From positions 89,101 through 153,100 of the forward strand of contig OZ287708.1 in assembly GCA_965649825.1 (NCBI GenBank): a stretch of DNA of 64,000 nt. Direction: 5' to 3'. The stretch's first letter is position 1. Each line of letters begins with the position of its first letter. Below are positions 66 to 57,312 of this stretch, one piece after another. The position numbers were made by a program, and so were the translations under genes. This stretch comes from Penicillus capitatus. Its lineage: Eukaryota > Plantae > Chlorophyta. A model generated the notes under the pieces. That model was not told the origin of the DNA. It searched no databases and saw only the letters and a program-made list of their open reading frames with translations.

Positions 66-2054
66 ATGCAGCGCGTATCGGAAGAGATTGAATTCGACTC
101 TGTTTCGGACGTCTACTATGTCCAACGGCAAAGCTGGGCAGTATGTCACGTTCTTTTCCGTTGCTCACTCTCATATCTCCTCAACAGGTTGCCCAGCACT
201 ACACTCTTCACAGAGTCATCGGCAGCGGCAGTTTTTCCTGTGTCTGTCTTGCGACCTCCAAGATTACGAATGAGAAGGTTTGGCTGCAGAGTAATGTCAG
301 GAAGGTGGCTGTCTTGAGAGAGCGTGCATGCAGGTCGCGTTAAAACGCATTCCAGATGTGCTTCAGAGTACCGAGAATGCCAAAAAGGTTCTCAGAGAGC
401 TGTGCATTCTTCGTCGACTCTCGCATCCCTACTGCATTTCTGTCAAGCATGCCTTTGTCATGCCTTCTGACACAGGTCACTGCATTGCCTTGTTTAACGA
501 GGGTGTGTGCTGGATGCGTGGGGTGCAGGAGCTTGGAAATTGCGAGGGGGTGAGCTGGTTCCTTGCTCGATCGATTTGTACTTAGCTATGGAATACGCTG
601 GAGGAGGTGATTTACATAAACTGAGAGGCCAGCTCTCGGAGCACGATGTCCGACGCTTGATGTGGCAGATTTTGACAGCCGTGGAGTATCTGCATTCCCA
701 GAATGTCTGGCATCGAGATCTGAAGTCTGCTAACGTGTTGCTGACAGTGGAGAATGGACAGCGAGTCTGTAAGATCGCAGATTTTGGATCAGCACGATCT
801 GCTGTTTCGCATCCTTTGTTGAGAGAGTCTGGTCTGTCAAAAAGACAGAGCTCATGCAGTATTACCAATATGGATGAGGCCATTGCACGTTCATTGAAGA
901 CAGTGGACCAGTCCTTGACACGTGCTGTGTGCACCCCCTGTTATCGTGCTCCTGAAGTGGTCATGTCTCGTGGGGGATACACCAGTGCTTTGGACATGTG
1001 GTCTGTTGGCTGTATCTTCGCCGAGCTTCTTCAGCGGATCTCTTACGTGGGATCTGCTTCCACTCCGCAACTGAAGGTGTCTCCTGTCTTTTGCGTGACA
1101 GGATTTCCAAAGACACCGTTGAGTGGAGAACACTACGAAGCTGGACCTGGAAACCCTACCACACGTTCTGAACTCGAGGCGCTGTTTCAAGTCATCGGCA
1201 CGCCTGCCTGGGCCTGCATTGAGGCAGTGGATTCGACGGCATGGAAGAGATACCTGCGAAATCTGCCTCTGAAAGCGGGCACACTCCATCGACGGTTTGG
1301 CTACGCCGGTGAAGTGGCAGTGGACCTCTTGACTCGATTGCTGACCTTTGATCCAAGTCGAAGGTGTTCGGCACGAGAAGCCATGCTGCATGAATACTTA
1401 AAAGAATTTTGGTGCCCCTCGAAGGATGCAGTGTCTCTGTCAGAGGATGGAGAATTCACATCGACCTCTTCCCTTTTTGAGCCAGTGGATGATATGGAAG
1501 ACGATCTGCCAGCAAACAACATCATTACCTCGCATTACCACGAACTCGAGAACCCTTCAAAGGCATTGAAGGCGTTGGAAGAAGAGATGGTACAGATCTG
1601 CAGTGATAAGAAAGGATGCGATCAGCTTCAGTCTCTTCTCGAGAAGGAATGCGAACTCTTGGCAGAATCTCAATCCCGAAAACTGGGAGCCGCGATATCT
1701 GGAAAGTACGGCGATGTCACAGAAGCTCTTGCCAGAAAATGTATGAGAGAAGGACCGTCTGAATTTGCAAAGCTCTTGGAGGAAGGCCTGGTCGCGGATC
1801 CAAACTGTGACAAATCCATGACGCCAGAGAGTTTTGGCCCGGGTCGTTTGCCTCACGTGGCAGATTTTTCAAAGGCGCATCTCGACGTGGAAAAACATTT
1901 AGCAGTAGGACGGCAGCAGGAATGGACAGTGACATCTGGATGTGGACCGATTACCGTGAACTATTGGGGAGTGAGTCTCGTTCCGCCTGGATCCGATGAA
2001 GCAACGATGGATCCAGAGATGAAGAAGATCATCCGCAGCCAGCAGTTGAGATAG
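66..2054 (+). CDS. Atypical MAPK-like (CMGC) Ser/Thr kinase, 4 exons
   Basis: GT-AG introns 141-187, 278-333 and 476-528 join the frames into one kinase: IGSGSFS Gly loop, VALKRI, HRDLKSAN, KIADFG, YRAPE, DMWSVGCIFAELL, DLLTRLLTFDPSRR. The activation segment reads LTRAVCTPCYRAPE with no TxY. Confidence 0.9.
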
Positions 2055-7501: not shown

Positions 7502-7986
7502 TGTGATCCGCGACTCTCTCGATGGATCGAACAAACGACTCGATTTTCGCCGCCAAACGAACTGGTAATAATGTTCTCATTAGAAGTCCATTTCATCTGT
7601 CCCATCGGCATCTCGATTGCCTGCATCAGCAATGCTGTTGCTACCGTGCCTCCTCTTTCTAAGATGGGGATCTAAAGTGGCATGATCATATTTTGTGAAA
7701 TCGATTGCTTTGCAAGATGCGATGACAAAACCGTGAGCTGCTTGAAGCACGTCTCAGCGCAATGACGCTCGATGATGTGTTGGCATGTGCCTCCTGCAAG
7801 AATGCTGCTGTCTCTAGAGTCAAGATGCATTCCGGTCTATTCTACAGGGTGTCTTGAGCATATGATCCATCCGTGCAGGACTCTACATTCGACAAGACAA
7901 CAGTACAAACGTCACATCATCATTTACCGCAAAGCCATTTGACGTGTCATTGGTTGCCGTTTACACCCAGCGAACTCCGTGCAAAC

Positions 7987-9082
7987 ATGTTTGGCTTCGA
8001 CCGATTCAGAGGAAGCAACTTTGAAGCGCGTTACCGAGCTTTTCCCGTTGCCTTTTTGGACAAAACCTCGGCAGAGGAAGGCGACAAAGTCATCCTGCCA
8101 CCCTCAGCGCTGGACCGACTCATCTCGTTACACATCGACTATCCTATGCTTTTCAAAGTGGAAAATCAAGCGAGTGAACGCACGACGCATTGTGGCGTCT
8201 TGGAGTTCACTGCCGACGAGGGACGCGTCTATTTGCCCTTCTGGATGATGGAAAACCTCCTTCTGAGGGAGGGAGACATTGTCGAGTTCAAGAATGCCTC
8301 ACTGCCAAAGGGCACCTATGTGAAACTTCAACCTGTCACATCCGACTTCTTGAATATTACGAACCCGAAAGCCGTTCTGGAGAAAACGCTCAGAAGCTAC
8401 TCCTGTCTGACAACGGGTGCGATGATGACAGTTATTTGATGGACTGAGATTTGTGAATGCATGTATAGGCGATGTTATTGTACTGAACTACAACAATCGT
8501 CGGTATGAGATCGAGATACGGGAGACGAAGCCGGGTGATGCCATCTCCGTGATCGAGACCGACTGCAATGTGGATTTTGAGGCGCCCAAAGACTATGTGC
8601 CACCTGTTCCTCAGGCTGCGCCGTCTCTTCCTAAACGGGAGGAGAAGACGGAAGAGGAGGCAACTGAGCCAGAAGCCGACCCCGATTCATTCCTGGCGTT
8701 TTCAGGAGCTGCTCAGAGACTGGACGGAAAATCAGTGTCCGCCGGCGGAGATCCTGTAAGAGTGCCACTCTACACTGGATTGACAAGATATCCGCCGCCG
8801 GATGAAAAGAAACCTGTTAAGAAGGAGAGCAACGGTAAGAATGGCAAGAATGGGAAATTCGTTTTGGGAAGCGGCAATCGACTGTTGGACAAACTGCAGA
8901 AGGATGGGAAGTTGCCAGGATCGCAGCCAGACACAAATCCATCCGCCTCTGCATCGTCGTCCGCAACATCATCTGCCAAACCGGATACCGATCCGTCAAA
9001 GAAGGAGGGCGATGACGAAGATTCCAAGAAAGATCAATCTGCATTCAAGGCATTCAGTGGAAAAGGTTTCTCGTTGAAATGA
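7987..9082 (+). CDS. UFD1: Ubiquitin fusion degradation protein 1 (p97/CDC48 cofactor), 2 exons
   Basis: GDKVILPPSALDRL, YPMLF, THCGVLEFTADEG, KGTYVKLQP, NPKAVLE; intron 8417-8468; C-terminal SHP-box-like FxAFSG motifs. Confidence 0.95.
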
Positions 9083-27239: not shown

Positions 27240-29260
27240 ATGGCGACGACACTGGATGCCAATGCAGGTGTGTTCTGTCACCGCGTTCGAGGTACATTCA
27301 CCTGAGGCGACGTTTCTGGACAGACAGCGGAGTCTCTCTTCTGCTGAGAAAACGCCTGCGTGATGGGGTCGTCTCTTCAGACGAAGAGCTGGAAGAGATC
27401 GAAAGCGAAGGGATGGATTCGGAATCGAATCCCATCTCCGACAGCATCATGACATCGACAGCATTCTCGAGTCTGGGTCTATCGGACGTGTTGACAGCGG
27501 TATGGATCGTTCTGCATCTCTGCTTCTGTCTGACGCCGTGAGCAGGCCATCGAGGAGATGGGACTGCAGTACATGACAAAGATCCAAGCACAGAGCATAC
27601 CGGAGGCGCTGAAGGGACAGGATGTACTCGGAGCAGCGAGAACAGGTGACCATTGCGTGGCGTTGTCGTCGGATGTGATGAGAGATGGATTGGCTGTTGA
27701 GGTTCTGGCAAGACATTGGCCTTCTTGATTCCGGCAGTGGAGGCGCTCTATCAGACAAAGTTCTCAAGTCTCAACGGCACGGGCGTCACAGTCATCTCTC
27801 CCACAAGAGAACTGGCTGTTCAGATCCATACCGTCGCTCAGGAACTCATGAAAGATCTTTCGCAAACCAGCGGTAACAAACGCCCCTGTAAGAATTGAGG
27901 GAACAGAATCCATATCGTTGGATGAAGGGCTGGTGATGGGTGGCTCCAATCGAAGGAACGAAGTGATGAAGTTGAGCAAAGGTGTCAATCTACTGGTGGC
28001 GACGCCCGGAAGACTACTGGATCATCTGCAGCACACCAAAGTGATCGACCTTTTCGAAATGAACGACAGATGTCACATCAGCGTCAGGAATTTCTGTGGA
28101 GGAATCTGTTCTGTTTGGTGATCGATGAGGCCGATCGGATTCTGGACGTGGGTTTCGAGGAAGAACTCAAGAGCATTGTCAAGATTCTGCCCAAAACACG
28201 ACAGACCATGCTCTTCTCGGCCACTCAGACGACAACAGTCACTACTCTCTCCTCCACTCCATCTTCCGACAAGCACAGCCCTTCAGGTTCGCGATTTGGC
28301 CAAGGTCTGTTTCCAGAAGGCGCCCATCTATGTGGGTGTCGATGACGAACGTCATGTCTCGACGCGTGAGACCCTCGAACAGGCGTACTGTATGGTGCCG
28401 CCTGAACTGCGACTCCGTCTGCTCATCACCTTCCTGAAGAAAAACAAATCGAAGAAAGTCTGTGCATTGTACGAAGGGCAAATCGTGAGTGCGTCGATCG
28501 ATGTGTCCTCGTAGATCATTGTGTTCTTTTCTTCGTGCAAATCCACACAGTTCCACAGCGATCTGTTCAATTTCATCGACTTGCCAGTGCTGTGTTTGCA
28601 CGGCAAGATGAAACAGAGTGCCCGTTCCAAGACATTTACAGAATTCTCCAAGGCCTCCAAGGGGACACTGTTCAGTACAGATGTCGCTGCCAGAGGACTG
28701 GACATTCCATCGGTCGACTGGATCGTGCAGTACGATCCGCCACTCGATCCCAAAGAGTATATTCATCGCGTGGGTCGCACAGCACGTGGTGTGGCGATGC
28801 GTGGCAAGGCATTGCTTTTCCTGATGCCACAGGAACGTCCCTTCCTAAATTACTTAAGGGAGGCACGTGTGCCTATACACGAATATGTGTTTCCTCAAAA
28901 CAAACTTGCCAATGTTCAATCGCAGTTGGAGAATCTCATCGAAAGCAACTACTATCTGCATACATCTGCGAGAGACGCTTATAAAGGATACGTTCTGGCA
29001 TACAACGCCCATATACTCAAAGATGCGTTCAATGCCCACACGCTCGATCTGATGAAGGTTTGTTCAGCGTCAGAATGATCGATAGATAGATAGTACATTG
29101 TCGTGATGTGATGTGACAGGTGTGTCAGTCATTCGGATTTACTGCTCCGCCCAAAGTGGACTTGAGATTGGAGAGCAAAGCAGCTCGAGTGCGCAAAGCT
29201 AAAGAAGAGGGAAAGCAGATAAAATTCAAACGCATCAAAGCGCAACAGGGTTCTGGCTAG
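27240..29260 (+). CDS. HAS1: DEAD-box RNA helicase HAS1/DDX18, multi-exon
   Basis: Q motif ([10 protein letters not shown]), [67 protein letters not shown]-terminal [14 protein letters not shown] at 27240 fits the phase of intron 1. Confidence 0.93.
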
Positions 29261-37992: not shown

Positions 37993-38991
37993 CTATTTTC
38001 CAGAGTAGGACTTGTGGCTCTTGTACTTGACGGTCTCCGACATGAAGCTGGACAGGATGAGACAGAAAACCAGCGTCAGGGCTGTTCTGGATGACAAGAC
38101 ACCTTGTGCGGGACATGTCGCTGTCAGTGCATTGTTTCCTTCTTCGTCGTGATGATGAGAATGATGCTCAGATGGCAGATACCCATCCAACAGGACTAGA
38201 CTAAGTGAAATTGATTGCGAGAGAAAACGGAAAAGATACTTCTCTGTATAACTCGTCAGCATAATACCAAGTGCCGCCGTGTGTGTCAGGAGAGAACTCG
38301 ATAAGGTAAAGGATGACGGGGCAAGAATTCCAGAGGTCATAAGCAGACACACATGCAGCACGGCATTTACAGAGGAGAGGACGATCGAGGAAGGCAGGGT
38401 TCTCTTCACGGCACATCGGTTAGCACACACAGCCAGAAGTAAACCAAGAAACGTCCAGAACTCGATGCCAGATGGAATCTCGGGTATCCAGTTAAAAACT
38501 ACACGGGAGACAGCTGCCAATAGAAAAGAGACATAGGTTATGTTTGGCGAATCGAAGAGCGCCTTCTCCAAACGATGCAGCCACCGGGACAGCATGTTTC
38601 TGGTATTGGAATGCGCGGGTGCAGCATTATCTGCTCTTGAACGTTCTTGTTGTTCTTCGATAAGCGTCGTCACTGGTGCAGGACGACTCGTTCCCCCTAA
38701 CGGTGTTCGGAATTCAACGTTTGAGTGAACCTCGTGGTCCGCGCCGGTTCCAGCGAAGAGTTGGTCGTTACACAATATACTGCGCGCTGCTTCGGGAGGC
38801 CCCAGCAACCCGTTCTTTAGCGCGCCCACCAGAGCCGACACGCCAACAGCTTCGCACACCTCGTCGGGGAATAGAAGAGTAGAGACATCAGCCAGACGCG
38901 CTTCAAGTAATTGCGTGTCTTGTACTGTTGTTTCACCTCCGAGAGGATTTTCCAGCCAGCTTGGTAAATCGGCCAACGCAGAGGCGGCCAT
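37993..38991 (-). CDS. Unknown intronless membrane protein (332 aa) with ~5-6 C-terminal TM helices and a His-rich loop
   Basis: Uninterrupted ORF; hydrophobic segments after about residue 150; EHHSHHHDEE loop before the last helix. Confidence 0.65.
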   Translation of the reverse strand: MAASALADLPSWLENPLGGETTVQDTQLLEARLADVSTLLFPDEVCEAVGVSALVGALKNGLLGPPEAARSILCNDQLFAGTGADHEVHSNVEFRTPLGGTSRPAPVTTLIEEQQERSRADNAAPAHSNTRNMLSRWLHRLEKALFDSPNITYVSFLLAAVSRVVFNWIPEIPSGIEFWTFLGLLLAVCANRCAVKRTLPSSIVLSSVNAVLHVCLLMTSGILAPSSFTLSSSLLTHTAALGIMLTSYTEKYLFRFLSQSISLSLVLLDGYLPSEHHSHHHDEEGNNALTATCPAQGVLSSRTALTLVFCLILSSFMSETVKYKSHKSYSGK

Positions 38992-39121: not shown

Positions 39122-42100
39122 ATGGGATGCCTCGAATCAAAAATCCAGGCTGTACAGGCGGGAGAAAACTATGAGGAGTCCGTACAACGACCATTAATAC
39201 AATGGACGGGTGCCGAGGTCGAAACCCTATTGCGACAACATCCCGTGCTGGAATCGTACGCGTCGACGGTTCTCAAAGTAATTTTGAACACTGTGAAATA
39301 TGCTTGCATCACTCCGAATCGTCTTCCAGGGAACAGTGGGCGCCGTGTTTGCTCAGATCACAGACGACGTGCTGAAACAAGCAGGTCGAAGGGTTCTTGT
39401 CGGGCTCTCTGATAAAGAAGGCGTCCCTGTGTCGGTGTAGGCGTTGACAATGGGCTGCATCGAATGCAGATTCTGCATCTGCGAGATGAACAGCTGCAAA
39501 TGGAAAGCCCATCGACATCTCCTCTGTCACCTCCTCCTCTTCAGCATTCCTTGTTTCTCGATTGCGAGGAGGGGAGATGGATTTGATCATCCGTTATGTG
39601 TAGGACGGACCGTGAACTGAGCCTGTCTCCGATCCGGACTCAGAACTCCTCGAACAGTCATTCGACGCAGTTGAAAGACAGAGGCTTCGAATCCGGTTCC
39701 CTGTCTGGCAAGAAGAAAGCAGATGTGGCAGATGTCGAAGGAGGGAAGTACATGGCCATGATGAAAATCCTGCCCAGTGGCAATCTCATTCGGTGAAGCT
39801 TCTCTCTCCGACGTCCCCTCTCGCACACATCATCTTATCTCCTCATCTGCAGCGTGGTGGGAGAAACGTTGCCTCTCGAGGCCAATGGGATCGCCAGTCG
39901 CGTCGTACAGCTCCATGAACTCCACAGCAAGGCGCTGTACAACACGGATAACTGTCGTCGATTTGTCAAGCGCTGTTGCCAGATGCAGAACCTCTTCGCG
40001 ACGAAGAAGCTGCAGCAGACTGTTCATAATGATGCTGTCATCCGCCTGATCGAAGAGATTCTAGATGACGCTCTCGAATTTTTCTCCCTTTTCTCGCAAC
40101 GGTGCTCAATCGTGGACGGAAAGCAGGAATCCTGAGTGTCTGTTTCGGCAGGGGATGGCTTGAACGGGTCCTCCACAGGCCCCGTGATAAGCAGGAGTTT
40201 CAAGAACTCGATCGGCGATTGATCGCTGCGTGTCTGAACGACAAGCACCTCACGATCTCCGATGTTTCGGCAACTAACCTGCAGCAGACTCCGGTACGCG
40301 GCTGCCGTCTGCGGTACATATTAAGCAGCGTATCACGATCAGATGTACACCAACGATACGAGGCGGCTGAGAAACGCCTTGTTCGACGTGGGCGGCATTG
40401 AAGCCTTGAGACAAGGCCGCGCTGCCGTCGAAGAATTGTCGGAGTACTTTCCGGAGGCGAAGCGATCTCAGCTGGACGACAGTATGCAAGGCGAAGTGGA
40501 GCACTACGCTATGCTCATCGACACGTGCAGTGCACACACTGTCATTCGGCACCCGGAATTGCAGGTACAACCGCCAAGACGCGCGTCGCTGACGTCTTAT
40601 ACAAAGGCATTCTGGAAACGACACTTTTCTCACAAGGATAGAATCACATGGGACGAATTTTGGCAGTGCTTTCCGCAGATTCTTAAAAAGTAGGCGTCTT
40701 TTTTGACGATCCCTTCCGATCTGATCTATTTGATCCAGTGAAGAGTGTCCCGTGCTTTGTGAACACATGAAGCGTTCACAGAATCGCGAGATCATACAGA
40801 TGTACATGACGAGGGCATTGCCTCAATTGCTATCCGCGACGGAGGTCGATTTCCTCTTTGAACCGCATCTGACGGTCGAGCAGACACTCCAGAAGCTCCT
40901 GTCCGTTTCATCTCAGCTCCGCGAACTGCCTTCAGCATCTGGAGATTTGAGCATCTCCTTAGGCGAAGGACCCATCAAGGACGGCATCGCTTGGAACTTT
41001 CCTCCGCCGGTATTGCAGAGGAAAACATGAGCACTGTTAGATATTCCCTCAAAGGTTGCGAATGCCATGGTGAGAGAAGAGCTGCTTGTCCAAGTGCTGT
41101 TCGGGGCACAAGATCAAGGCACAAAGATCATGCAGTTAACAGGCACCGCTGGATGCGGCAAATGCGTCTTCGCCAATCAGCTTGCGAGGTGTCTGCTTTC
41201 GTTCGGTCAATGGACAGAAGCTTATTGGATCGATCTCACCGGCATCTGTTCTCACACAGCAGCAGGTTTGGGCACATTGGCAATCACGTGATTCAGGAAA
41301 CGGGTGGTCAGGTTATCATATCATGAGTGAAATGGGCGTCGTGTACGAGGCGGCAGATCTAAAATTTGTTCAAGGCTTCCTGCAACGTCGACAGGGATCA
41401 CTCGGCATCGTCGTCACCGGAATCGATGCCCTTGTGTGCAGCCGCGATGACGAATCTCGACTATTAGATTCATTGGAAAACCTGACCAATGCTGGTGAAC
41501 ACGTGCAGATCGTTATGCTATCACATACGAAGTTAAGGGAAACGCGGGCGTGCATGGTTCATTATGAATTGCCCCCTTTTTCATTGGCTCTGTGCAGCAA
41601 TTGGATGCAGACGCAACTCGGCAGGGCTGCTCCAGAGAAAGAGGAGATAGAACAGTTGATCATCGAGATATCGCACCCTCTGTGCCTCGGAATGATTTCT
41701 AGTCTGGTCCGTATGGGAGCCATCAGTTTGAAAGAGATTTCTGAAGCCATTGAGAACAAGGCACTATCGCACTTAGCAGATAAAGTCACGTCAGACACGT
41801 TTTCGGCTCTGAAAGCAAAGGAACGCAGGTTCTGAGAATCGGCTATCAGTTTTTCGAGATCCAGATCCTGCAGGTGTTTGCTTGCATGTGTTCTTGCTCT
41901 CGAAGAGGAGTTGCTGCAACTGGCTTGCATGCTTTCGCTTTTCCAAGGGCCATTCAGAACAGAATTTGCCGTGGCTCTTGTTCAGAATACCGACATCGGC
42001 GCTGCGGCAGTTCAGGGCAAGCTGAGAGAACTGCGGAATCGAGGAATTCTCGCTCACAACGAGAATTCAGCAGTTCACAAATTTCATCCGCTCATCCGAA

Positions 42101-44442
42101 CCACTTGTCAGTGTCTGTCGACACATCTAGGTGACTGCTCTCACGATCAAATTGCACAAGAAGAGCTGTTGTCGAAGGTATGAGTCTTGATCAGTCGACC
42201 AAGAGTTTTTTCGACGCCGTTTACAATAAATGCGTCTGGAAAGCAGAACAGATGATAGCGCATGCAACATTTGTCACAGCTGCTTTGCATACTTTGCACC
42301 GAGATCAAGTCCATGTCTACCGATTCATGCAGATGGCGAGTTCAGAGGGTGCAGAAGAATCTCTCGGGACTGTTGAGAAATTTCTGTGGGAAGCCCTTCC
42401 TTCATTGTCCTTCCGACTCAATGCTTCGGCACTCGAAAGTGTGTCTGTCGATCGATTGGTGATATGACCAGACTCTGTCCTGCTTCCAGAATTCTATGAA
42501 GCCTGTCTAAGCATTGCCGAAAAGCTCGGCAATTCGCGATTCAAGATCCGGTGCTTGATTCAAACAGGAGAGATGTTGCGGAATGTGGAACGACTGCAAG
42601 AATCCGAAAATGCGCTTCGAGATGCCTTAGCTCTTTGCTTCTCGCATCTCGAAGATCAGTCGCTGGAAGCAGCGAGATGCTACGAAGGCAAGAGGGCAGA
42701 TCATAAACAACAACACTCATGTCCAGTTGGCTGAAGGTATTGGACTGAGCTGTCTTAAGTTGAAGAAGGTCACGGACTCGATCGATTGCTACGAAAAGGC
42801 AGTTGAGCTATACAAAAGCGTGAAGGGGCAGAGATCTGTGGAGACGGCACAATGCAGTCTGGCACTGGGAAAAGCTCTTGGCATGGGCAAACGTCATGCT
42901 GATGCCTACGAGCACTGTATTGCGGCGTTTGGCATACTTAAAGACACCTACGGCCCAGAACATGTGCTCGTTGCACGGGCGTATGCAGACAGCGGCGCTC
43001 AGCTGAAGCATATGAAGAGGGAACGAGATGCCGAGGCTGCATACAGGCATGCCCGTTTCGACGTGGGAACATTCTTGTATGTTCGGCCTAGGAACGCAAT
43101 GGAGGTGCTGGAGAAGATTTTGGGGCCGTCACATCCAGAGGTCGCTAGTGTGATCGTCGAATTTTCGACAGTGCTACGGGCGATGAAGAAACTGAATACA
43201 GCAGAGTCTTTGCTGCTCACCGCTTTACAAATCAGGGAATCGAATTTTGGCCCCTTTCATCCAGAAACAGCGTCGTGCGTCCAGCTTTTGTCTGCACTCT
43301 ACAAAGTACATGCTTTCGGCCGTTCTGATCTTGTCGACCGCTGTGCTTCGTGACAGGCAATGCTTCGATTTGATGAGGCTGCCAATTTTGCTTCCCGTGA
43401 TGTTGAGTTGCGTAAGCGCATGTTTGGTCCAGCCGACGGCGAGATCACGGCGGCATTGATGTCGCTGGTCCTCATTCTGATCGAGAAAGGAGAGTAAGCA
43501 GTGACACTTTTTCGTGCGGGATGACAATGTACAGCTCAGTTACTCAGGCGCCTACAGTCATTGCAAACGAGCATTGAGTATACGAGAGAAGCAGTTCGGC
43601 AGCTGCGATATAAGAGTCGCCCAAACATGTAACATCATGGGAATCATACAGAGACAGCTGGGACGATATGAAGAGGCAAAAGCGATGGTCGAGCGTAGCT
43701 TGAGCATTAAAGAATCCAAGTTTGGCGACCGCCCGCATCCCGAGATCGCGGGTTCTTTAAATGGTCTAGCCGAAATCGAGAAAGAGCTCGAACAGTAAAC
43801 GCAATGGCGGATACTGAGCAACAGCCTGCTTTGGCCCTGCAGGTTGGCTTCGGCCGAGAAGAACAGCAGAAAGAGTGTCGAGATTCGAAAAAAAGCACTT
43901 GGCGAAAATCACCTCTCGACAAGCCTCTCCTTGCAGACCCTGGCGTCCATACTAATGGAAACAGAGAGCTACGAAGAAGCTGAAGACTACATTCGCCAAA
44001 GCATTCGTATTAGGTATGTCCTCTTACATCCTAATTTCATATCGCTTCTCTTTTCCTGCGACAGAGAAAAGCATTTCGGAGAAGACAGCTTTCAGTGCAT
44101 GCAAGCATATGATATCCTGGCGGGCATCTTGTGTAAGAAAGGGCGTTTGGATGAGGCAGAGGAGAAAGCCCACACGTCCATCGACACAAAGATCAAGATC
44201 TTGGGACACAACCATCCAGAAGTTGGGCGTTCACTCGTTGGTATGTCTTTACAAGATTTGTCTGCGACAAAACGTCGAGGGCTTTGCTTTTAGTCCTTGG
44301 TGGCATTCTCATGGCTCGTTCAAACATTGCAGCTGCAAGACAAAAGATTCAACGAGCTTTGAGCATTTTTACATGTTCGTTTGGGGAGGATCATCCAAGT
44401 ATCAAGAAAACTGAACAGATTCTCGAAGGAAAGAACTTGTGA
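39122..44442 (+). CDS. NLR-like STAND protein: N-acylation motif - SAM - MLKL-like 4-helix bundle - EF-hand-like - NB-ARC - winged helix - TPR array
   Basis: MGCLESK start. SAM: WTGAEVETLL...ITDDVLKQAGVDNGLHRMQIL. 4HB: LHELHSKALYNTDNCRRFVKR...LDDALEFFSLFSQRGWLERVLHRPRDKQEFQELDRRL. EF-like: AFWKRHFSHKDRITWDEF. NB-ARC: WNFPPPVANAMVREELL, P-loop GTAGCGKC (41142-41165), SHPL, FHPLIR. TPRs of the LGPSHPEVA type. Introns checked through about 43350 and in the last exon restore frame. Confidence 0.88.
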
Positions 44443-46574
44443 GTCAGTGTCATTATCGCTTTTCTAAAAGAGATAGTATGGGAAAACAGAACTGCAACTG
44501 TACGATCATCAAACGACATTTGATATCAAGCCTTCTTCGCTAAAGAATACAGAAAACGAAACGACGACGCGATCCAGGTAGAAACGCGTTAGCGGTACAA
44601 ACACTGTTGTCTGCTTTGCTTTTAGATCCATTAGAGGCCGAAAGACGCAAGAAAACGCGACCGTGCCCCCGCGAAACTGCGATACCGGAGAGTTGATTTT
44701 TCTGTTTACATTTTTCACACACGGTGGCTTCTGTCTTCCAAACCAGACTGTTTTGCTCCTTGTTTAACGAAAAAGTGTCCTGCAATGCTGTCCGGCTTCC
44801 GAAGTGTTCCGCTAAATCCGCAGATTGTATTCAAATAAAAAGCATCGCTATAGATCGTTGTGCCGAGTGGCATGGAAAGGAGAACGTCGAAAGTGAACGA
44901 CGATCTTGAAGCCCCAATCACCGCTCACATTGACGCTCAGCGATACTCTAAATGCGAAAGACGACCGTTCGCGGGTTCTCGTTCGTGACCAGCAAGCCGC
45001 ATTTATCGTCTGCGAATGTAGAATGCATGCGACCTTCTCGATCCCCTTCCCATAGCAAAACCGAAAGAGATCTAAGGATGAAGAAGATTGCGAAGATATT
45101 AATGTTCTTCGATTGGGGCCTAACTCGTCACAATTAAATCCACTAGACACAACTAAGCAAGATGAAGAAAACATTCAGGTGACAAATAGTAGCTCAATTC
45201 CAAAACCCATTGGATGTGCCGCGGGAGTGGTGATGAAGAAACATTGGCTTTCGATCCTTAAGGGCAGTATGACATTTGAGAATAGAATTCCAACGTCTTG
45301 ATTTTCTGGATGATTTACCGCTAGGAGGGAAAACGAGTTGTGATAGCTAACTGATTTCTAAAAGGTTCCTCCGAAGCATTGACTGAACTTGTTTTCACTG
45401 AATCGAACTTTAGTACTCGGCGATTAAAGTCCATTGGCTCTGAGTCGAAGAAAGTAAGCGGGTGATTTTGCCAGAAAACGTAGAAACAAGTACCACACAG
45501 AAGCTATGCACCATTTCAGAGGATTCGGACGCTTGGTGATTGGTACCTAATGGCACTCTGTATGATTCTTATGCTCAACGAGTAAAGCACATTGGCATTT
45601 GTTTAGCGAAATTCACTAAAAGGGTGTATGTTTACCTCTTTGAGGGGTTTTGGGGATGGACGAATATGTTTCGAGTTATAAGCTTGTTTGCATGCCAGTA
45701 AGGCGTCATGTAGCTATCTAGGTATCTAAACAGACCTGAATTTTTTACGCCTGCAATTGTAAGTATTAACGTTGCAAACGAACGTCATTCGTACCCATGT
45801 AACAATGGTTCTTGCCTTCCTTTGCTGCACACAATCTGAAGGAAATTGACAGCGAGCATCTAAAGTAATTTGCTTCATAAACTCTGTCTCCAGATGTGTA
45901 CGATTATACTCGATCGCGACTTTCTCGCTAGAAGTTTGTTCTCGTGATTTCAGGATTACCAACCTTGAATCCTGCGTCTTCTTCTCAACGCTATTCTGCC
46001 TCGTTCCGTGTAGTGGATGGAGGACCCAAAAAAGAAGATGGTCTTTCTGAATGCTTGAATTCACCGACGGAATGCAGATTTCGAGATCGCTGTTCTGCTT
46101 TCAATTCCACAGGACGCAGAACATATTCGACAGAATCCGTTGTCCAACGTATACACAGGTTCCACTTGACCGTATACAACCTGATAAACCGTATAGCGTG
46201 TCGAACGTTGCCTGTTTCGCTTTTCCAAAGACTGAAGCTCAAATACCGCAACTTCAAATTTTCCTGCTGGTAAATCTTCAGACCGTTATCGGCCCGTACA
46301 CTCAAAACACGCTTCGTCGTATTCGTGTTATCGCCCTGTTCAATACGCGAATGTGTCGAGAGACTTGATGCACGACAATTTTAACGTAGATCTGATGTTG
46401 GTGACGCGCTTGCTCCGTACTGTTTCCGCACCAGACGCATTCTTTGTTCCATTTCGAATGCGTGTCATTTCTTTCGCTTTCGTTTAAGGTTCTCGGGTAT
46501 TCGTTATTCGTGTACGTGGCAAGACGCACTGTTCCCGACAACCATCGCTTTCGGTCAAGTCAAATTTGTTCTGT

Positions 46575-49500
46575 ATGAAGTGGACATTGTTGATTATATT
46601 GCTGTCCGCTGGTTCGTCCTGCCAAACAGTGGACACAACCAAGTTCTTTGGAAAATGGAACGATAAACTGCGCGATATCGCGGATGAAATCACGGCGCGT
46701 TTATCTGCAACCGAAAGCAGAAATTGCGAGTGCAGTTACTACGCTTGTGGAGAAAGGCCAGATAAAAACATAACGGAATGTCTCAAATCAGACCACAAAG
46801 AAAAACTGGTCTGCGGCGTCGATCCCTGTGGACATATGAATGTCTGCTATTCTTCAATGTGTGGGCGAATGCCAACTGTTTGCTTTGTAGCTCAGCATAA
46901 ATCGAACATTCGTTCGCATACCACCTTCTGCGACACCGGGCAGTTACGGCAACGCAATCAAGAGAGACATCTGCTTAACTCAGGTGCCTACATGCAGCGC
47001 TTTCACTTTGCACGACCTTTTTCAGGGTTTGGAAGACGCATTCAAAAATGCCAGAGATTACACGAGTGGGTTTGTTCCGTGGACTTACTTTGGGGCAGCA
47101 GAGGCAGGAATATTCGTGTACTGTGCATTTTGATGCAAATATGACATCAGAAAGTAGGACTGGTTTTAGGGGCTGGCCAGGAAAGCCGCGAGAGCAGGTG
47201 AAACTTGGAATATGTCGAGACTACGATCCAGTAACAATGATTTCTAGTGTTCACATCTCTCTAGACGAGTCTGTGTCTAGAGAGTTCGCCCTTGGTGGAG
47301 GCGAGCAGCCTGGCATCCGAGGAATATTGTGATTCTCGTCGATCTCACGACATCCATGAAGGACAAGATCCGAGGAACCGAGAAGTGGAACATGACTCTA
47401 AACATCGTTACACGCTTCTTGGAGACTCTGTCGGAGGACGACGCAGTTCAGATTGTGGGTCTGAAGAGTGAACCCAAAGTGCTGATGGGTCCGGACAGGA
47501 CGATGCCCGCCACGGAGCAGACTGTCGAGAGGTTGACAAACCGGTTGAGAAGGTGGGAACCCGATGAAGGCGACTCTGTTGTGGATATCGGCAAAGCGAT
47601 CGATCGAGCCATGGATCTGCTGCATGCCAACAAGGACCGAGGAATCACAAAATGCGAGAACGTATCCCACTGCCTTCTCTCTTTCTCGAGATGACTGTTG
47701 CTGTCTAGCACATTCTGCTGTTTTCACACAGAAGGGACTGCAGCCATTCCATCAAACGAGACTGCGCGTCCAAGATGTTTGTGAACGAGGATGGAGAATC
47801 CGTCTCTCGACCGGTCGAATCGACAATCGGCGTCGTGGAAGATATCATAGACAGGCAGAACAAGGATTCGCTCAGAAAGAAGCCAATACTCTTCTCCTAT
47901 ACCCTGTCCCCAAAGGCAAACGGCATGCTGAGCCAGTTAGCTTGCCGGCTGGATGGAATCCACGTCGATCTAGAGCGTGAGCTCGAAAAAGGTGGCATCC
48001 GGATTCACGTCAGAATACTCTTGCCATGAGTTGTATCTTCAGGTATCCTGGACCCTCTCCATCTGATGCGTGGGTACTTTCGAAGAGCAGCGTTGACGGT
48101 GGCCAATGCCACTGGAGGAAAGATTTCCGTAAGTAACATGTACAACGATGACTCTGGGTTAGGAAGAATGAACACGCTCACGATGCCGGTCTTCTATAAG
48201 TCGCATTTTGACTGCCCGCCAATTCATTATGGGGTCATCGGAGCCGACATGCGACAATCCGACTATCGAGCCAACGGAATTGTAGCAGATTCACTTAACT
48301 TCGAGAATGATGTATCTAACTGGAATGAACATGTCACAGAGTGCAAATCCATACGAGTCACTCGTTGTCATATGCAAGTCCTGAGGGAGAAGGAAGGGCA
48401 ATGCGTCTATCCTCTGGAAAAATCAGGAGACGAAAAATGCTTCGAGTTTAAGAAGCACATCTACTACGTCGAAGAAAAAAGAGCGATGAAGTTGGAAGAA
48501 GCCAAAGAGTACTGCCTGAGTCTAAGTGGGCAGATGATCGCACCGCGGGATGTTGAGGAGAGGCGTTTTCTGGCTACCTTGATGCCGCCGGACGGCGCGT
48601 GGATCAACATCACTCACGATGACGAGATCGACTGGAAGTGGCCAGACGGCGAACGACTTGATCCAGAAGAGAGGAAGAGCATCGAGCGCTCCTGCGATTA
48701 TCCCCTCCCTCCCGGATTCTACATGGACCCTCGAGACTACGATAACAACTTTCAGTGTGTACAACAGCTTGAACGAAAGACAGTCGTCTGTCAGTTCGAC
48801 GCAGGACAGATCCCGAAAGTTTGCCGATCCAACGTCGTGCTCTGCATTCTGGTATTTCGATGACGGTTTGTTTTGCTCCAGATTGTGGTGTCTGTCACAG
48901 AAGATGACTTCGTGGACACGATACGTACCTGTGATGCGGAGGACTGTCTTCTGACGAACATACCGTCTGATGGCTACACGTCGCTGCAAGAAACTGACAT
49001 ATTCTGCAACTGGAATATGTTAGTAGATAACGATTTCTCCAAAATTGGCTGTTGTTCGCCGGAAGACCTGATCAGGGAGTGTGACGCGGTGGTAACACGC
49101 ATCATTGTTGTAGTCTTTCGCAGTTGATGTGAGTGGTTGTAGGAAGTGAACGACATGGGATTCAACGTAACAAATGAGATCAAAAATGATTCCAGCAGTG
49201 GGAATACCACGGTTGTAGTTGCAGTAATTATTGTGGCCATCGTGGTGGTGATCTTAGCCACACTGTGCTTCTGCTGCGCCCGTCGACAAAGGTCCTCTTT
49301 TGACAAGCCGAGTCATAAGCCAATCCGTTTAGCCTCTGCGGATTACTTAAATCGCCGCCTTGATGTAATGATCGGAAATCGTTCCGGAAGACCTGGGTCT
49401 ATTCAAAGTACATGCAACATTTGCTTGCAACAGAATCTCAGTTTATGTGCAGGTCCATTTGCGGTTGCCTCGCCGAAAGCTGCTGGATCAATCGGAAAGA

Positions 49501-50517
49501 GACCGGAATTGGTGGTCAACATCGAGGTCAATATTCTCGACAATGGATGGGAGAAGATCGGAGGCTACGGCCGCGTCCGACAAGGGGAGTATACGGACAC
49601 CACAGGGAATGTGCACAAGGTGGCCGTCAAGTTCGTGGACGCATTGGCACCTAACGCCGCGTGGGAGGCCCTCAAGAACGAGTTTGACATCCTGGCTTCC
49701 ATTCCTCTCCATCCGAACATCGTCAAGCCCATCGGCGCCCACTGGGGGGACCGCACGCAGAACTCCCAGCGCTACATCGTCGAAGAGCTGATGCACACCA
49801 ATCTTGGAGATCTGATGATCGACACGAGTACTCCGTCTTATCCCGGCAAGACCATGGTGTACAAGGACTGGATCAATATCTTCGTCGGCATCGCTCGTGG
49901 TCTGGAGCATCTCCACCAGCATAAGATCATCCACTTCGACTTGAAACCTAGAAACGTCCTCCTAGACGAGGACATGAACGCCAAGATTGCAGACTTCGGT
50001 TGCTCCAAGTCGAAGTTTGATACCTACATCGAACTCAGCAAGATGGGCGGAACTCCTCCGTACCTGGCACCGGAGTGCTGGATGCTCTACTACGCGCAGA
50101 ATGTCAGAACGGAGGTGGCGAGAGTCAAGATCGACGTCTACAGCTTTGGCGTGATCATGTGGGAGTGTTTAAACGGAGGGAACAGTTTGGCGACTGCGTT
50201 GTACAAACGCAAAAGCACGGCATCTCCTCAGGCCTCTGCCAATCCGGACAACATCGAAATTGTCCGCGAGAGCCGTTCGTCTGGTAAGCAGCCAAGTGAT
50301 AGACCTACCAGTGTTCTTCATCTTCTCTTCTGATGTAGAAGGAAACCAGCAGTGGGAGATCCAGTACTATCTCAGCGAAGAGATCCCTGAAGGCTTGAGG
50401 AACTTGGTCACACAGTGTGTCCGTGTCGATTTTGATTTCCGACCGACATGCGGGCAGATTCTGGACACCCTGGTGCCTATGCTTGACGAAGAGTGGGCAA
50501 ATCATCCAGTTCCTTAG
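46575..50517 (+). CDS. Receptor-like kinase: signal peptide - alpha2delta-like dCache/vWA - C-type lectin domain - TM - non-RD TKL kinase
   Basis: Signal [19 protein letters not shown]|RVRPWW...[12 protein letters not shown]...[32 protein letters not shown]...GVIGADM. CTLD: [12 protein letters not shown]...[14 protein letters not shown]...[29 protein letters not shown]. Kinase: [35 protein letters not shown]. Confidence 0.9.
47275..49010 (+). repeat. Left arm of a ~1.7-kb inverted duplication (partner 54884-56626)
   Basis: Long runs identical to the reverse complement of 54884-56626, including introns. By eye about 90% identity or higher. Confidence 0.95.
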
Positions 50518-54790: not shown

Positions 54791-57312
54791 TCACTTTTCA
54801 CTTGCTTGCACAGAACACTCGCTGAGTGGTATTTTGGAGCAACAGGCGAGTTCATTATAGTCATAGTCGAAAATGTGTCTCTTGTTGCAGAATATCTTAG
54901 TTTCTGGCAGCGACGTGAAGCCATCAGACGGTATGTTCGTCAGAAGACAGTCCTCCGCATCACAGGTACGTATCGTGTCCACGAAGTCATCTTCTGTAAC
55001 GGACACCACTCTCTGGAGCAAAACAAACCGTCATCGCCATACCAACCAGAGTGCAGAGCACGACGTTGGATCGGCAAACTTTTGGCCTCTGTCCTGCGTC
55101 GAACCGACAGACAACTGCCTTTCTTTGAAGCTGTTGTACACACTGAAAGTTGTTATCGTAGTCTCGAGGGTCCATGTAGAATCCGGGAGGGAGGGGATAA
55201 TCGCAGGAGCGCTCGATGCTCCTCCTCTCTTCTGGATCAAGTCGTTCGCCGTCTGGCCACTTCCAGTCGATCTCGCCATCGTGAGTGATGTTGATCCACG
55301 CGCCGTCCGGCGGCATCAAGGTAGCCAGAAAACGCCTCTCCTCAACATCCCGCGGTGCGATCATCTGCCCACTTAGACTTAGGCAGTACTCTTCGGCTTC
55401 TTCCAACTTCATCGCTCTTTTATCTTCGACGTAGTAGATGTGCTTCTTAAACTCGAAGCATTTTTCGTTTCCTGATTTTTCCAGAGGATAGACGCATTGC
55501 CCTTCCTTCTCCCTCAGGACTTGCATATGACAACGAGTGACTCGTATGGATTTGCACTCTGTGACATGTTCATTCCAGTTAGATACATCATTCTCGAAGT
55601 TAAGTGAATCTGCTACAATTCCGTTGGCTCGATAGTCGGATTGTCGCATATCGGCTCCGATGACCCCATAATGAATTGGCGGGCAGTCAAAATGCGACTT
55701 ATAGAAGACTGGCATCGTGAGCGTGTTCATTTCACTCAATCCGGAGTCGTCGTCATACATGTCACTTACAGAAATCTTTCCTCCCCCAGTTGCCTCGGCA
55801 ACCGCCAACGCTGCTCTTCGAAAGTACCCACGCATCAGATGGAGAGGGTCCAGGATACCTGAAGATACAACTCATGGCAAGAGTATTCTGACGTGAGTCT
55901 GGATGCCACCTTTTCCGAGCTCACGCTCCAGATCGACGTGGATTCCATCCAGCCGGCAAGCTAACTGGCTCAGCATGCCGTTTGCCTTTGGGGACAGGGT
56001 ATAGGAGAAGAGTATTGGCTTCTTTCTGAGCGAATCCTTGTTCCGCCTCTTTATGATATCTTCCACGACGCCGATTGTCGCTTCGACCGGTCGAGAGACA
56101 GATTCTCCATCCTCGTTCACAAACATCTTGGACGCGCAGTCTCGTTTGATGGAATGGCTGCAGTCCCTTCTGTGTGAAAACAGCAGAATGTGCTAGACAG
56201 CAACAGTCATCTCGAGAAAGAGAGAAGGCAGTGGGATACGTTCTCGCATTTTGTGTTTCGCGGGTCCTTGTTGGCATGCAGCAGATCCATGGCTCGATCG
56301 ATCGCTTTGCCGATATCCACAACAGAGTCTTCCTCATCGGGTTCCCACCTGCTCAACCGGTTTGTCAACCACTTGACTGTCCGCTCCGTGGCGGGCATTG
56401 TCTGGTTCTGACGCATCAGCACTTCGGGTTCACTCTTTAAACCCACAATCTGAACTGCGTCGTCCTTCGACAGTGTCTGTAAGAAGCGCGTAACGATGTT
56501 CAGAGTCATGTTCCACTTCTCAGTTCCTCGGATCTTGTCCTTCATGGATGTCGTGAGATCGACGAGAATCACAATATTCCTCGGATGCCAGGCTGCTCGT
56601 CTCCACCAAGGGCGAACTCTCTAGACGTGTATCTCTTTGACAGTGAATTTTGGACAGCGTAAATACCGGATCATATTCGCGACACTCTCCTGGTCTTTGT
56701 TGCTCTCGAGGCTTTCCTGGCCACATTCTGCAAGCACGTGTTTGTGTTTTAGTACACATGATGCATATTACATTAAGACTCCAGTCTCGGATGCACCGAA
56801 ATAGGTCCAAGGAACAAATCCACTTGTGTAATTCCGTGCTTCCATAAATGATTCTTCCAGTCCCTGTGAAACGATCTAGTAAACGAAGACCCTGATCAAA
56901 CAAACCTGTGTCAGACAAACGTCTCTCTTGATCTCGTCGACATAGCTCCCTGCTGCAGTAAAGGGCGGAGTGAGGACATATGCACGTTGCGTGCTGAGCT
57001 GCTCATCGTTTCTTCATTAATTTACGAATGAAAGCAATCGATACAGACTTGCATGTGACCGCAGTGCGGAACGCCACAGTCGAGTTTTCCGACGTGGCCT
57101 GACTTGAGGCATTCCGTTAGAGAATTCGGCGGTCGCTCTCCGCAAGCATGGTAGCTGCATTCACAAGTTCTCTTCTGGGTCGTATTGAGTCGCGACGTAA
57201 GTTCGTTCGCCAAGCTCTTCATCCGGTTACTCCAGTCTTCAAAAAACTCTTCCGTATCTGTTCTTGCGCGACACGCGCTGAAAAGAACCAGTAGAAAGAA
57301 AAAAAATCGCAT
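54791..57312 (-). CDS. Kinase-less, TM-less paralog of the receptor ectodomain (signal peptide - dCache/vWA - CTLD); secreted protein or truncated copy
   Basis: Signal MRFFFFLLVLFSACRA. Same exon structure and motifs (YDP|RVRPWW, DLTTSM, MYDDDSG, GADM, CTLD). The frame ends ...CCSKIPLSECSVQASEK* and no TM or kinase sequence is visible downstream. Confidence 0.8.
54884..56626 (-). repeat. Right arm of the ~1.7-kb inverted duplication (partner 47275-49010)
   Basis: Reverse complement matches 47275-49010 from GTCTAG|AGAGTTCGCC to ATTCTGCAAC. Confidence 0.95.

Follow-up and report, generated by a model that had tools for sequence, protein, structure and literature searches.

The window analysed here, a 64,000-nt stretch of contig OZ287708.1, contains on its forward strand a gene (39122-44442) that may well encode a receptor of the NLR (nucleotide-binding leucine-rich repeat) type in the broad sense, built on a STAND (signal transduction ATPase with numerous domains) switch. 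The predicted chain runs from an acylation motif and a SAM domain to a helical bundle resembling MLKL_N, a spacer of about 200 residues, a divergent NB-ARC nucleoside triphosphatase (NTPase) and a tetratricopeptide repeat (TPR) array as the putative sensor; taken as a whole, this reading of the gene is evenly balanced in our judgement. The tripartite layout of effector, nucleotide-binding oligomerization domain and repeats was found in one predicted spliced frame. A preliminary description of the locus had proposed a SAM domain, a four-helix bundle, an EF-like segment, NB-ARC and TPRs in one frame and, with them, a one-component sensor and executor that would make pores. That interpretation is partly supported, in that the order of effector-like bundle, STAND NTPase and TPRs stands up in one green-algal gene.

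Gene structure and conservation of an allele

The window is eukaryotic DNA with a G+C content of about 50%, in which open frames are broken every 150-500 nt. The exons of the model (Table 1) are separated by 19 introns of 45-60 nt (mean 49.7), of which 17 have GT-AG and two have GC-AG borders. Retention of the intron leads to loss of the frame in 16 of the 19 cases. The ATG at 39122 is the first one downstream of an in-frame stop. The largest non-coding gap within the model is 60 nt, which, together with the short introns and a divergent open reading frame (ORF) only 130 nt upstream, leaves no room for separate transcription units. The single spliced frame that had been described was thus reproduced with exact coordinates, with 20 exons in one frame and with splice sites that are kept in an allele.

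The junctions of the model are not all equally certain. Introns 42688-42736 and 43047-43091 were read as GC-AG because the register of the TPRs is restored only by those junctions, and both GC donors are kept in the allele. Intron 3 (39553-39603) is the one whose placement is least secure. At the junction of exons 11 and 12, intron 42178-42251 is a possible alternative to 42131-42177, and an optional in-frame intron of 42 nt is possible at 40565-40606.

Searching for exact copies of one TPR exon brought up a locus, designated L004, on contig ctg340397 (572 kb) of the ENA metagenome assembly ERZ25074695. L004 is a separate copy whose DNA is 99.09% identical to that of the window, and because this contig carries an allele, several other ORFs of the window gave no exact match. 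When it was projected on the model, there were no indels in the exons, the sole stop codon was the terminal one and all 19 splice-site pairs were kept. The two copies differ at 16 of 4377 exon nucleotides and at 13 of 944 intron nucleotides, indicating that the exons are 3.8 times more conserved. The codon changes comprise 10 synonymous and 6 non-synonymous ones, and all six amino acid differences fall within residues 544-893, with none in the SAM domain, the bundle or the TPRs. Residue 544 (41163-41165) lies in the Walker A motif and is Cys in the window (GKC) and Ser in L004, which has the canonical GKS. Differences distributed in this way are the mark of a real gene on which purifying selection acts, and they validate the assignment of exons and introns. 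On the same comparative grounds, the locus is best explained as a single intact gene that selection maintains.

The helical bundle and its resemblance to MLKL

The top Pfam match of the bundle was MLKL_N (PF22215), with 24.1 bits and an E-value of 2.7e-5 for the isolated domain of 130 residues, compared with a curated cut-off of 27 bits; within a longer query the score was 20.5 bits. Human MLKL, run against the same profile as a control, scored 204.6 bits. The match spans residues 19-109 of the domain and positions 10-104 of the 142 in the profile, and it is the only Pfam match that covers most of the domain. Fragments of exon 5 only, taken singly from the window and from its relatives, gave no match to MLKL_N, indicating that the Pfam signal needs helix 4 too. 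A phmmer search of the PDB with the bundle returned nothing relevant.

An exhaustive HMMER search with exon 5 alone identified four divergent relatives in other metagenomes. Three of them, on Logan contigs, and a fourth, on a JGI contig, cover helices 1-3, and the four identities are 70, 49, 49 and 44%. Two further matches were discarded as repeat artefacts. The relatives keep Y29, N33, R35, F37, R40, C41, C42, Q45, E67, E68 and A73 (domain numbering) and share the exon end ...FS(Q/E)R. Within the family, conservation is highest on the basic face of helix 2. Immediately in front of the bundle, the segment KYMAMMKILPSGNLIR is identical at 15 of 16 residues in the relative P0123, whose bundle is only 70% identical. 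In P0123, exon 4 and exon 5 are adjacent, as in the gene of the window.

The bundle family was then aligned by hhalign with human and mouse MLKL, the N-termini of which were checked against PDB 6D74 and 4BTF. A single collinear alignment of 103 columns was obtained over all four helices (query 21-124 and MLKL 15-130) with a score of 27.2 and P 7.6e-4. When the columns of the bundle family were shuffled 300 times, the scores were 11.9 ± 2.3 with a maximum of 20.5, which places the real score at a z of about 6.6. The reversed alignment scored 17.5, and other windows of 130 residues from the same largely helical protein scored 8.5-19.4. The bundle as a single sequence scored 21.5, and the increase to 27.2 when the four homologues were added indicates that the homologues strengthen the MLKL signal. 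The family-invariant residues Y29, R35, R40 and A73 and the FS at the end of helix 3 are aligned with Y23, R29, R34, A72 and F79-S80 of MLKL. Of the MLKL residues, Y23, R34, A72 and F79-S80 are invariant between human and mouse, and R29 is Gln in mouse. The two MLKL motifs that had been picked out by eye were both reproduced in this alignment.

The structure model covers exon 5 (helices 1-3) alone. The AlphaFold model has helices at residues 8-26, 32-49 and 60-79 with a predicted local distance difference test (pLDDT) score of 75.8, and under the hhalign register these are equivalent to helices 1-3 of MLKL. When the three-helix fragment was submitted to Foldseek, human MLKL (6D74) ranked sixth among 350,542 chains with a TM-score of 0.66 and a root mean square deviation of 3.8 Å, at an E-value of 2.6 that is not significant, so that the match agrees with an MLKL-like arrangement but does not prove it.

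From these comparisons, remote homology of the bundle to MLKL_N is somewhat more probable than its absence. The MLKL-like bundle that had been proposed therefore stands as regards its MLKL_N match, the best and the only one over the full length, and the hhalign P value, with the Pfam score remaining short of the cut-off.

The NTPase, the TPR array and the N-terminal region

The long TPR array is confirmed by Pfam, in which TPR_12 (E 5e-56, 187 bits) and TPR_10 (E 2e-54, 180 bits) both passed their thresholds. TPR_NPHP3 also scored 163 bits against a cut-off of 100, although this match is not specific. In NCBIfam, FxSxx_TPR matched the TPR part only (E 8e-44).

The NTPase is more divergent. The pattern GxxxxGK[ST] of the Walker A motif was taken as present, with GTAGCGKC in the window and GTAGCGKS in L004, compared with GMAGCGKS in APAF-1. 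NB-ARC was the top Pfam match of the P-loop, with 14.8 bits and E 0.017 over profile positions 10-68 only, and missed the cut-off of 23.5; NPHP3_N, with 12.4 bits and E 0.18, missed the cut-off of 24.8. In hhalign, residues 184-309 of the NTPase region (region numbering) were aligned with residues 311-431 of APAF-1, in its part with ARC1 and the winged-helix domain (WHD), with a score of 31.7 and P 9e-4. The APAF-1 sequence, residues 118-449, was checked against PDB 1Z6T. The alignment begins at the GxP motif (ECKGSPLV in APAF-1 and EISHPLCL here) and ends just short of the MHD-type histidine. The corresponding control of 100 shuffles gave 14.6 ± 2.6 with a maximum of 25.7. No NTPase match was found in PADLOC or NCBIfam, a phmmer search of the PDB with the NTPase returned nothing relevant, and the AlphaFold2 model of exon 10 was of low confidence (pLDDT 49.7), so that a Foldseek search with it is meaningless. 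Because of the alignment with ARC1-WHD of APAF-1 and the presence of the Walker A, Walker-B-like and MHD-position motifs, the predicted NTPase is probably a divergent NB-ARC-type STAND module, with scores that fall short of formal family membership. The NB-ARC domain named in the preliminary description is weakly supported by the motifs and by APAF-1, and in Pfam it is represented by the sub-threshold P-loop match.

The stretch between the bundle and the NTPase, residues 302-507, gave in Pfam only Cbl_N2 (E 0.07) and DUF4388 (E 0.08). The EF-like segment previously noted within it is not supported. Cbl_N2 was its only match, the canonical D, D/N/S and G of positions 1, 5 and 6 are replaced by H, K and D in the putative loop HFSHKDRITWDE, and there is no second hand to pair with it.

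At the N-terminus, MGCLESK resembles the MGC..S start of G-alpha-i and Src-family proteins and also conforms to the PROSITE-type rule for myristoylation, G-{EDRKHPFYW}-x(2)-[STAGCN]-{P}. Gly2 and Cys3 of the protein are therefore predicted sites of lipidation. No hydrophobic stretch long enough for a transmembrane helix was seen in the protein. The SAM domain was recognized by SAM_1 of Pfam with 18.2 bits and E 0.0034, below the cut-off of 23. The top matches by phmmer in the PDB were SAM1 of liprin-alpha-2 and -3 (E 0.004-0.05), followed by the SAM domain of SARM1 (0.3). Since the match to liprin-alpha SAM1 (E 0.004, liprin-alpha-2) is independent of Pfam, a SAM fold is likely; the assignment made earlier thus rests on two independent weak matches, one of them under the Pfam cut-off.

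Alternative explanations

Several observations weigh against a receptor with an MLKL-type effector. All domain calls outside the TPR array, that of MLKL_N included, are below the curated cut-offs of Pfam. The hhalign probability for the bundle and MLKL is low, 25%, the Foldseek match to MLKL lacks significance, and a profile of helices 1-3 found no matches in the PDB. Pairwise BLASTP to human MLKL recovered the helix-4 motif only, FSQRGWLERVLHRPRDKQEFQELDRRL, with 37% identity and E 0.032. MLKL and the coiled-coil (CC) executors of plants use a free N-terminal bundle, but that of the algal protein has about 170 residues in front of it and is thus internal. Moreover, the allele of the window has Cys at the Ser/Thr position of Walker A.

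The possibility was considered that the protein serves, without lysis, as a STAND scaffold or as an ATPase in signalling, like NPHP3 or other NB-TPR signalling proteins, and that the bundle would be an adaptor or a regulatory module without membrane permeabilisation. NPHP3 is an N-myristoylated, coiled-coil, P-loop and TPR protein. The MG- start is as in NPHP3, the TPR_NPHP3 score is above its cut-off, and the weak P-loop match to NPHP3_N is nearly equal to that of NB-ARC. The SAM domain and the lipid anchor would also point to a scaffold that resides at the membrane. Many of the roles of NB-TPR proteins lie outside immunity (PMC7145615), which likewise counts for a scaffold, and because the bundle is internal, with its 170 or so residues ahead of it, this explanation remains a serious rival. 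However, TPR_NPHP3 is matched by any TPR_12-type array, the ARC1-WHD region can be aligned with APAF-1, and the bundle matches the MLKL_N family alone, with the basic face of helix 2 as its best conserved part. We consider such a scaffold rather unlikely.

It is also conceivable, if distinctly less probable, that the resemblance to MLKL does not reflect homology and that the bundle is a lineage-specific one or a coiled coil like that of plants, which would share with MLKL an amphipathic periodicity and a few basic residues. The bundle and MLKL scores are all sub-threshold, as noted, the PDB profile search was empty, and the family consists of only five sequences limited to helices 1-3. Additionally, LRR_Zer-1 matched helices 1-2 with similar strength (E 6e-4); this match looks spurious and was rejected as a 31-residue stretch without leucine-rich repeat (LRR) periodicity. 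However, chance periodicity does not account well for a collinear alignment of 103 columns across all four helices, for conserved positions that coincide in both families, or for a score that increases with homologues and exceeds that of the reversed control, in which the helical periodicity is kept (27.2 vs. 17.5).

It is very improbable that two or more genes, such as one with SAM and bundle and one with NTPase-TPR, have been joined in the model, or that the locus is a decaying pseudogene. In favour of this are the GKC of the window and the fact that the position of intron 3, the junction of exons 11 and 12 and both GC-AG introns are inferred; set against it are a single frame through 20 exons with no internal non-coding gap above 60 nt, an allele without frameshift or premature stop that keeps every splice site and has exons more conserved than introns, and the adjacent exons 4 and 5 of P0123.

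Relatives, host and neighbouring genes

A word-index homology search with the N-terminal 507 residues and with the NTPase region of 430 residues revealed no relatives among the 8000 candidates considered for each, which is weak evidence that there are none. No related loci were found in prokaryotic genomes, viral contigs or JGI metagenomes with protein and family-alignment queries, and there is no paralogue of the gene within the 64 kb of the window. The features of the gene are collected in Table 1.

Table 1. Predicted features of the NLR-like gene, in window coordinates
Feature	Position	Strand	Residues	Basis or remarks
NLR-like gene, whole predicted model	39122-44442	+	1458 codons and stop	20 exons; splicing by hand and by dynamic programming, junctions curated singly from ATG 39122
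Exons 1-10	39122-39277, 39330-39384, 39441-39552, 39604-39792, 39853-40101, 40152-40293, 40343-40689, 40739-41009, 41055-41265, 41312-41828	+		
Exons 11-20	41874-42130, 42178-42438, 42490-42687, 42737-43046, 43092-43305, 43357-43493, 43540-43794, 43843-44013, 44065-44240, 44294-44442	+		
MGCLESK, candidate signal for Gly2 N-myristoylation and Cys3 palmitoylation	39122-39142	+		Read from sequence
SAM-like domain	39206-39478	+	29-83	Pfam SAM_1, PDB phmmer; across two introns
Ser/Pro/Lys-rich linker	39479-39745	+	84-155	Without family match
Conserved pre-bundle segment KYMAMMKILPSGNLIR	39746-39853	+	156-171	Last codon split by intron 4
MLKL_N-like helical bundle	39854-40293	+	172-301	Exon 5, helices 1-3; exon 6, helix 4
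Basic patch CRRFVKRCC in the bundle	39953-39979	+		
Stretch of about 206 residues without assigned family	40343-41009	+	302-507	Includes 'EF-like' AFWKRHFSHKDRITWDEFWQCF at 40607-40681
Divergent NB-ARC-type STAND NTPase	41055-42179	+	508-836	Pfam, hhalign, motifs
Walker A GTAGCGKC	41142-41165	+		
Walker-B-like LGIVVTGID	41401-41427	+		
GxP-like SHPLCLG	41671-41691	+		
MHD-like KFHPLIR	42079-42099	+		
TPR array, about 12 repeats of TPR_12/TPR_10 type	42567-44439	+	949-1458	

The host was assessed from a UFD1 exon (7858-8436). The closest named proteins are those of Scenedesmaceae (Hariotina, Scenedesmus and Tetradesmus) with 75% identity, followed by Sanguina with 71%, Nephroselmis with 66% and land plants with 63-67%; cryptophyte, fungal and haptophyte proteins are 49-56% identical. 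These identities indicate that the host is a chlorophyte green alga. The green-algal origin suggested earlier is therefore retained, and nothing in the analysis points to the giant cell of a siphonous ulvophyte that had been envisaged. Across the UFD1 region, two contigs of ERZ26696514 are 87.6% identical to the window. The window is thus matched only approximately, at 99.1% by ctg340397 and at 87.6%, in that region, by ERZ26696514, from which it follows that sampling of the alga has covered three or more related genomes or haplotypes.

Upstream of the NLR-like gene, 130 nt from its ATG, lies the divergent ORF mentioned above (37993-38991, reverse strand). It is intronless, encodes 332 residues with hydrophobic stretches and without a Pfam match, and an identical product is called in a public collection. 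A bidirectional promoter may serve them both, this ORF and the NLR-like gene. On the other side, 2-6 kb downstream (about 46500-50333, forward strand), a series of ORFs matches VWA_2 (weakly), Lectin_C (E 1e-8) and a protein kinase (E 5e-34), and these may be one receptor-kinase-like gene beside the NLR-like gene. The VWA_2 and C-type-lectin exons of this downstream gene are covered by an inverted segmental duplication, in which 47275-49010 (+) and 54884-56626 (-) are 95% identical over 1744 bp.

At other places in the window (507-2054, 7858-9079, about 27926-28342 and elsewhere), exon-level Pfam searches identified a protein kinase, UFD1, a DEAD-box helicase, WD40 propellers, a flavin reductase-like protein and a member of the tubulin-tyrosine-ligase family. 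Searches of the window for tRNAs, Rfam families and tandem repeats were negative.

Proposed mechanism and significance

If the gene encodes an NLR-like receptor, the protein would be held at the membrane through lipidation of Gly2 and Cys3, and the TPR array would keep the NTPase off. A ligand bound by the TPRs could then trigger nucleotide-dependent oligomerisation, possibly aided by the SAM domain, by which the receptor might even be pre-assembled. Oligomerisation would cluster the bundles at the membrane, where the basic face of helix 2, CRRFVKRCC, a candidate lipid-binding surface, may engage acidic lipids. The resulting disturbance of the membrane or of the ion balance could provide a cell-death or defence output. 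We infer the lipidation, the oligomerisation, the membrane action and the immune role by analogy. More tentatively still, chlorophytes could carry a new family of lipid-anchored, SAM-containing NLR-like receptors that have a true homologue of the MLKL executioner domain as their effector.

How plant NLRs came by their four-helix-bundle executors is a matter of debate. If the present reading is correct, the design in which a bundle effector is mounted on a STAND switch reaches a third eukaryotic lineage. True homology to MLKL would mean that fusions of bundle and STAND are ancient in eukaryotes, or that they were assembled independently for a third time, after fungi and plants. The anchor, SAM domain, bundle and switch in one chain would also make a compact test case for how a bundle is unleashed. 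If, however, the bundle resembles MLKL without being related to it, what remains is an NB-TPR orphan of the ordinary sort.

Intracellular immune receptors are reportedly scarce in chlorophytes (PMC13315243). NLR-like combinations have been described in Scenedesmaceae from Pfam screens at E 1e-5 (PMC13315243), a threshold that the present NTPase is too divergent to reach. Surveys that depend on thresholds would, if the reading holds, under-count algal NLRs, and the published ones would have missed genes of this kind through the divergence of the NTPase.

Comparison with known systems

Nephrocystin-3 (NPHP3) shares with the algal protein the Gly2 lipidation signal, a P-loop NTPase and an array of the TPR_NPHP3 type. 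However, it has no MLKL-like bundle, and the algal NTPase stays well under the NPHP3_N cut-off (12.4 bits compared with 24.8) and aligns with APAF-1 in ARC1-WHD.

In vertebrate MLKL, the four-helix bundle is followed by a brace and a pseudokinase (PDB 2MSV, 6D74 and 4BTF). MLKL provides the best family match of the algal bundle, which is collinear with its residues 15-130 and shares equivalents of Y23, R29/R30, R34, A72, F79-S80 and D94-K95. The regulators are different: MLKL has a pseudokinase that is activated by RIPK3, whereas the algal protein has a STAND NTPase with TPRs, and its bundle is internal.

Among green organisms, streptophyte algae have NLR-like proteins with a four-helix bundle of CC/RPW8 type and alternative repeats, and TIR-NB-ARC-TPR proteins (TNPs) are widespread (PMC10952240, PMC11218826). 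Klebsormidium has NB-TPR genes, and Chromochloris has NB-LRR genes (PMC7145615). The CC and CC-RPW8 NLRs of plants, the streptophyte bundle proteins and the TNPs share with the algal gene the green lineage and, as far as the algal domains are predicted, either a four-helix bundle as effector or TPRs as the sensor of an NB-ARC protein, and activation of the resistosome type is the common working model. Unlike plant NLRs and TNPs, the algal gene would combine a bundle instead of TIR with TPRs instead of LRRs, and it has no Pfam match to RPW8 or Rx_N.

The combination had been put forward as not known to be described in chlorophytes. Consistent with this, the open-access literature searched yielded no account of a chlorophyte STAND protein with an MLKL_N-like bundle, or with an acyl-SAM prefix, while a layout of this kind is frequent in fungi (PMC9815663). 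Effector-NB-ARC-TPR, as also stated in the preliminary description, is the canonical layout of fungal and bacterial NLRs (PMC4986451, Dyrka 2014), and some 600 basidiomycete NLRs have MLKL_NTD-like N-termini termed BaMLKL (PMC9815663, Wojciechowski 2022). An MLKL-like N-terminus on this layout is therefore already established in fungi, and the chlorophyte host and the acyl-SAM prefix are what is new, as judged from the reports found. No sequence relationship of the algal gene to the fungal members turned up, and no direct test of one was made. The fungal NLRs join an MLKL_NTD-like, HeLo-like or Goodbye domain to NB-ARC or NACHT and to TPR, ANK or WD40 repeats, and the algal gene would follow the same three-part logic of bundle, STAND module and TPR_10/TPR_12 repeats. 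Unlike them, it belongs to a chlorophyte host, its bundle comes after a candidate acylation motif, a likely SAM domain and a linker, and about 200 residues without assigned family separate the bundle from the NTPase.

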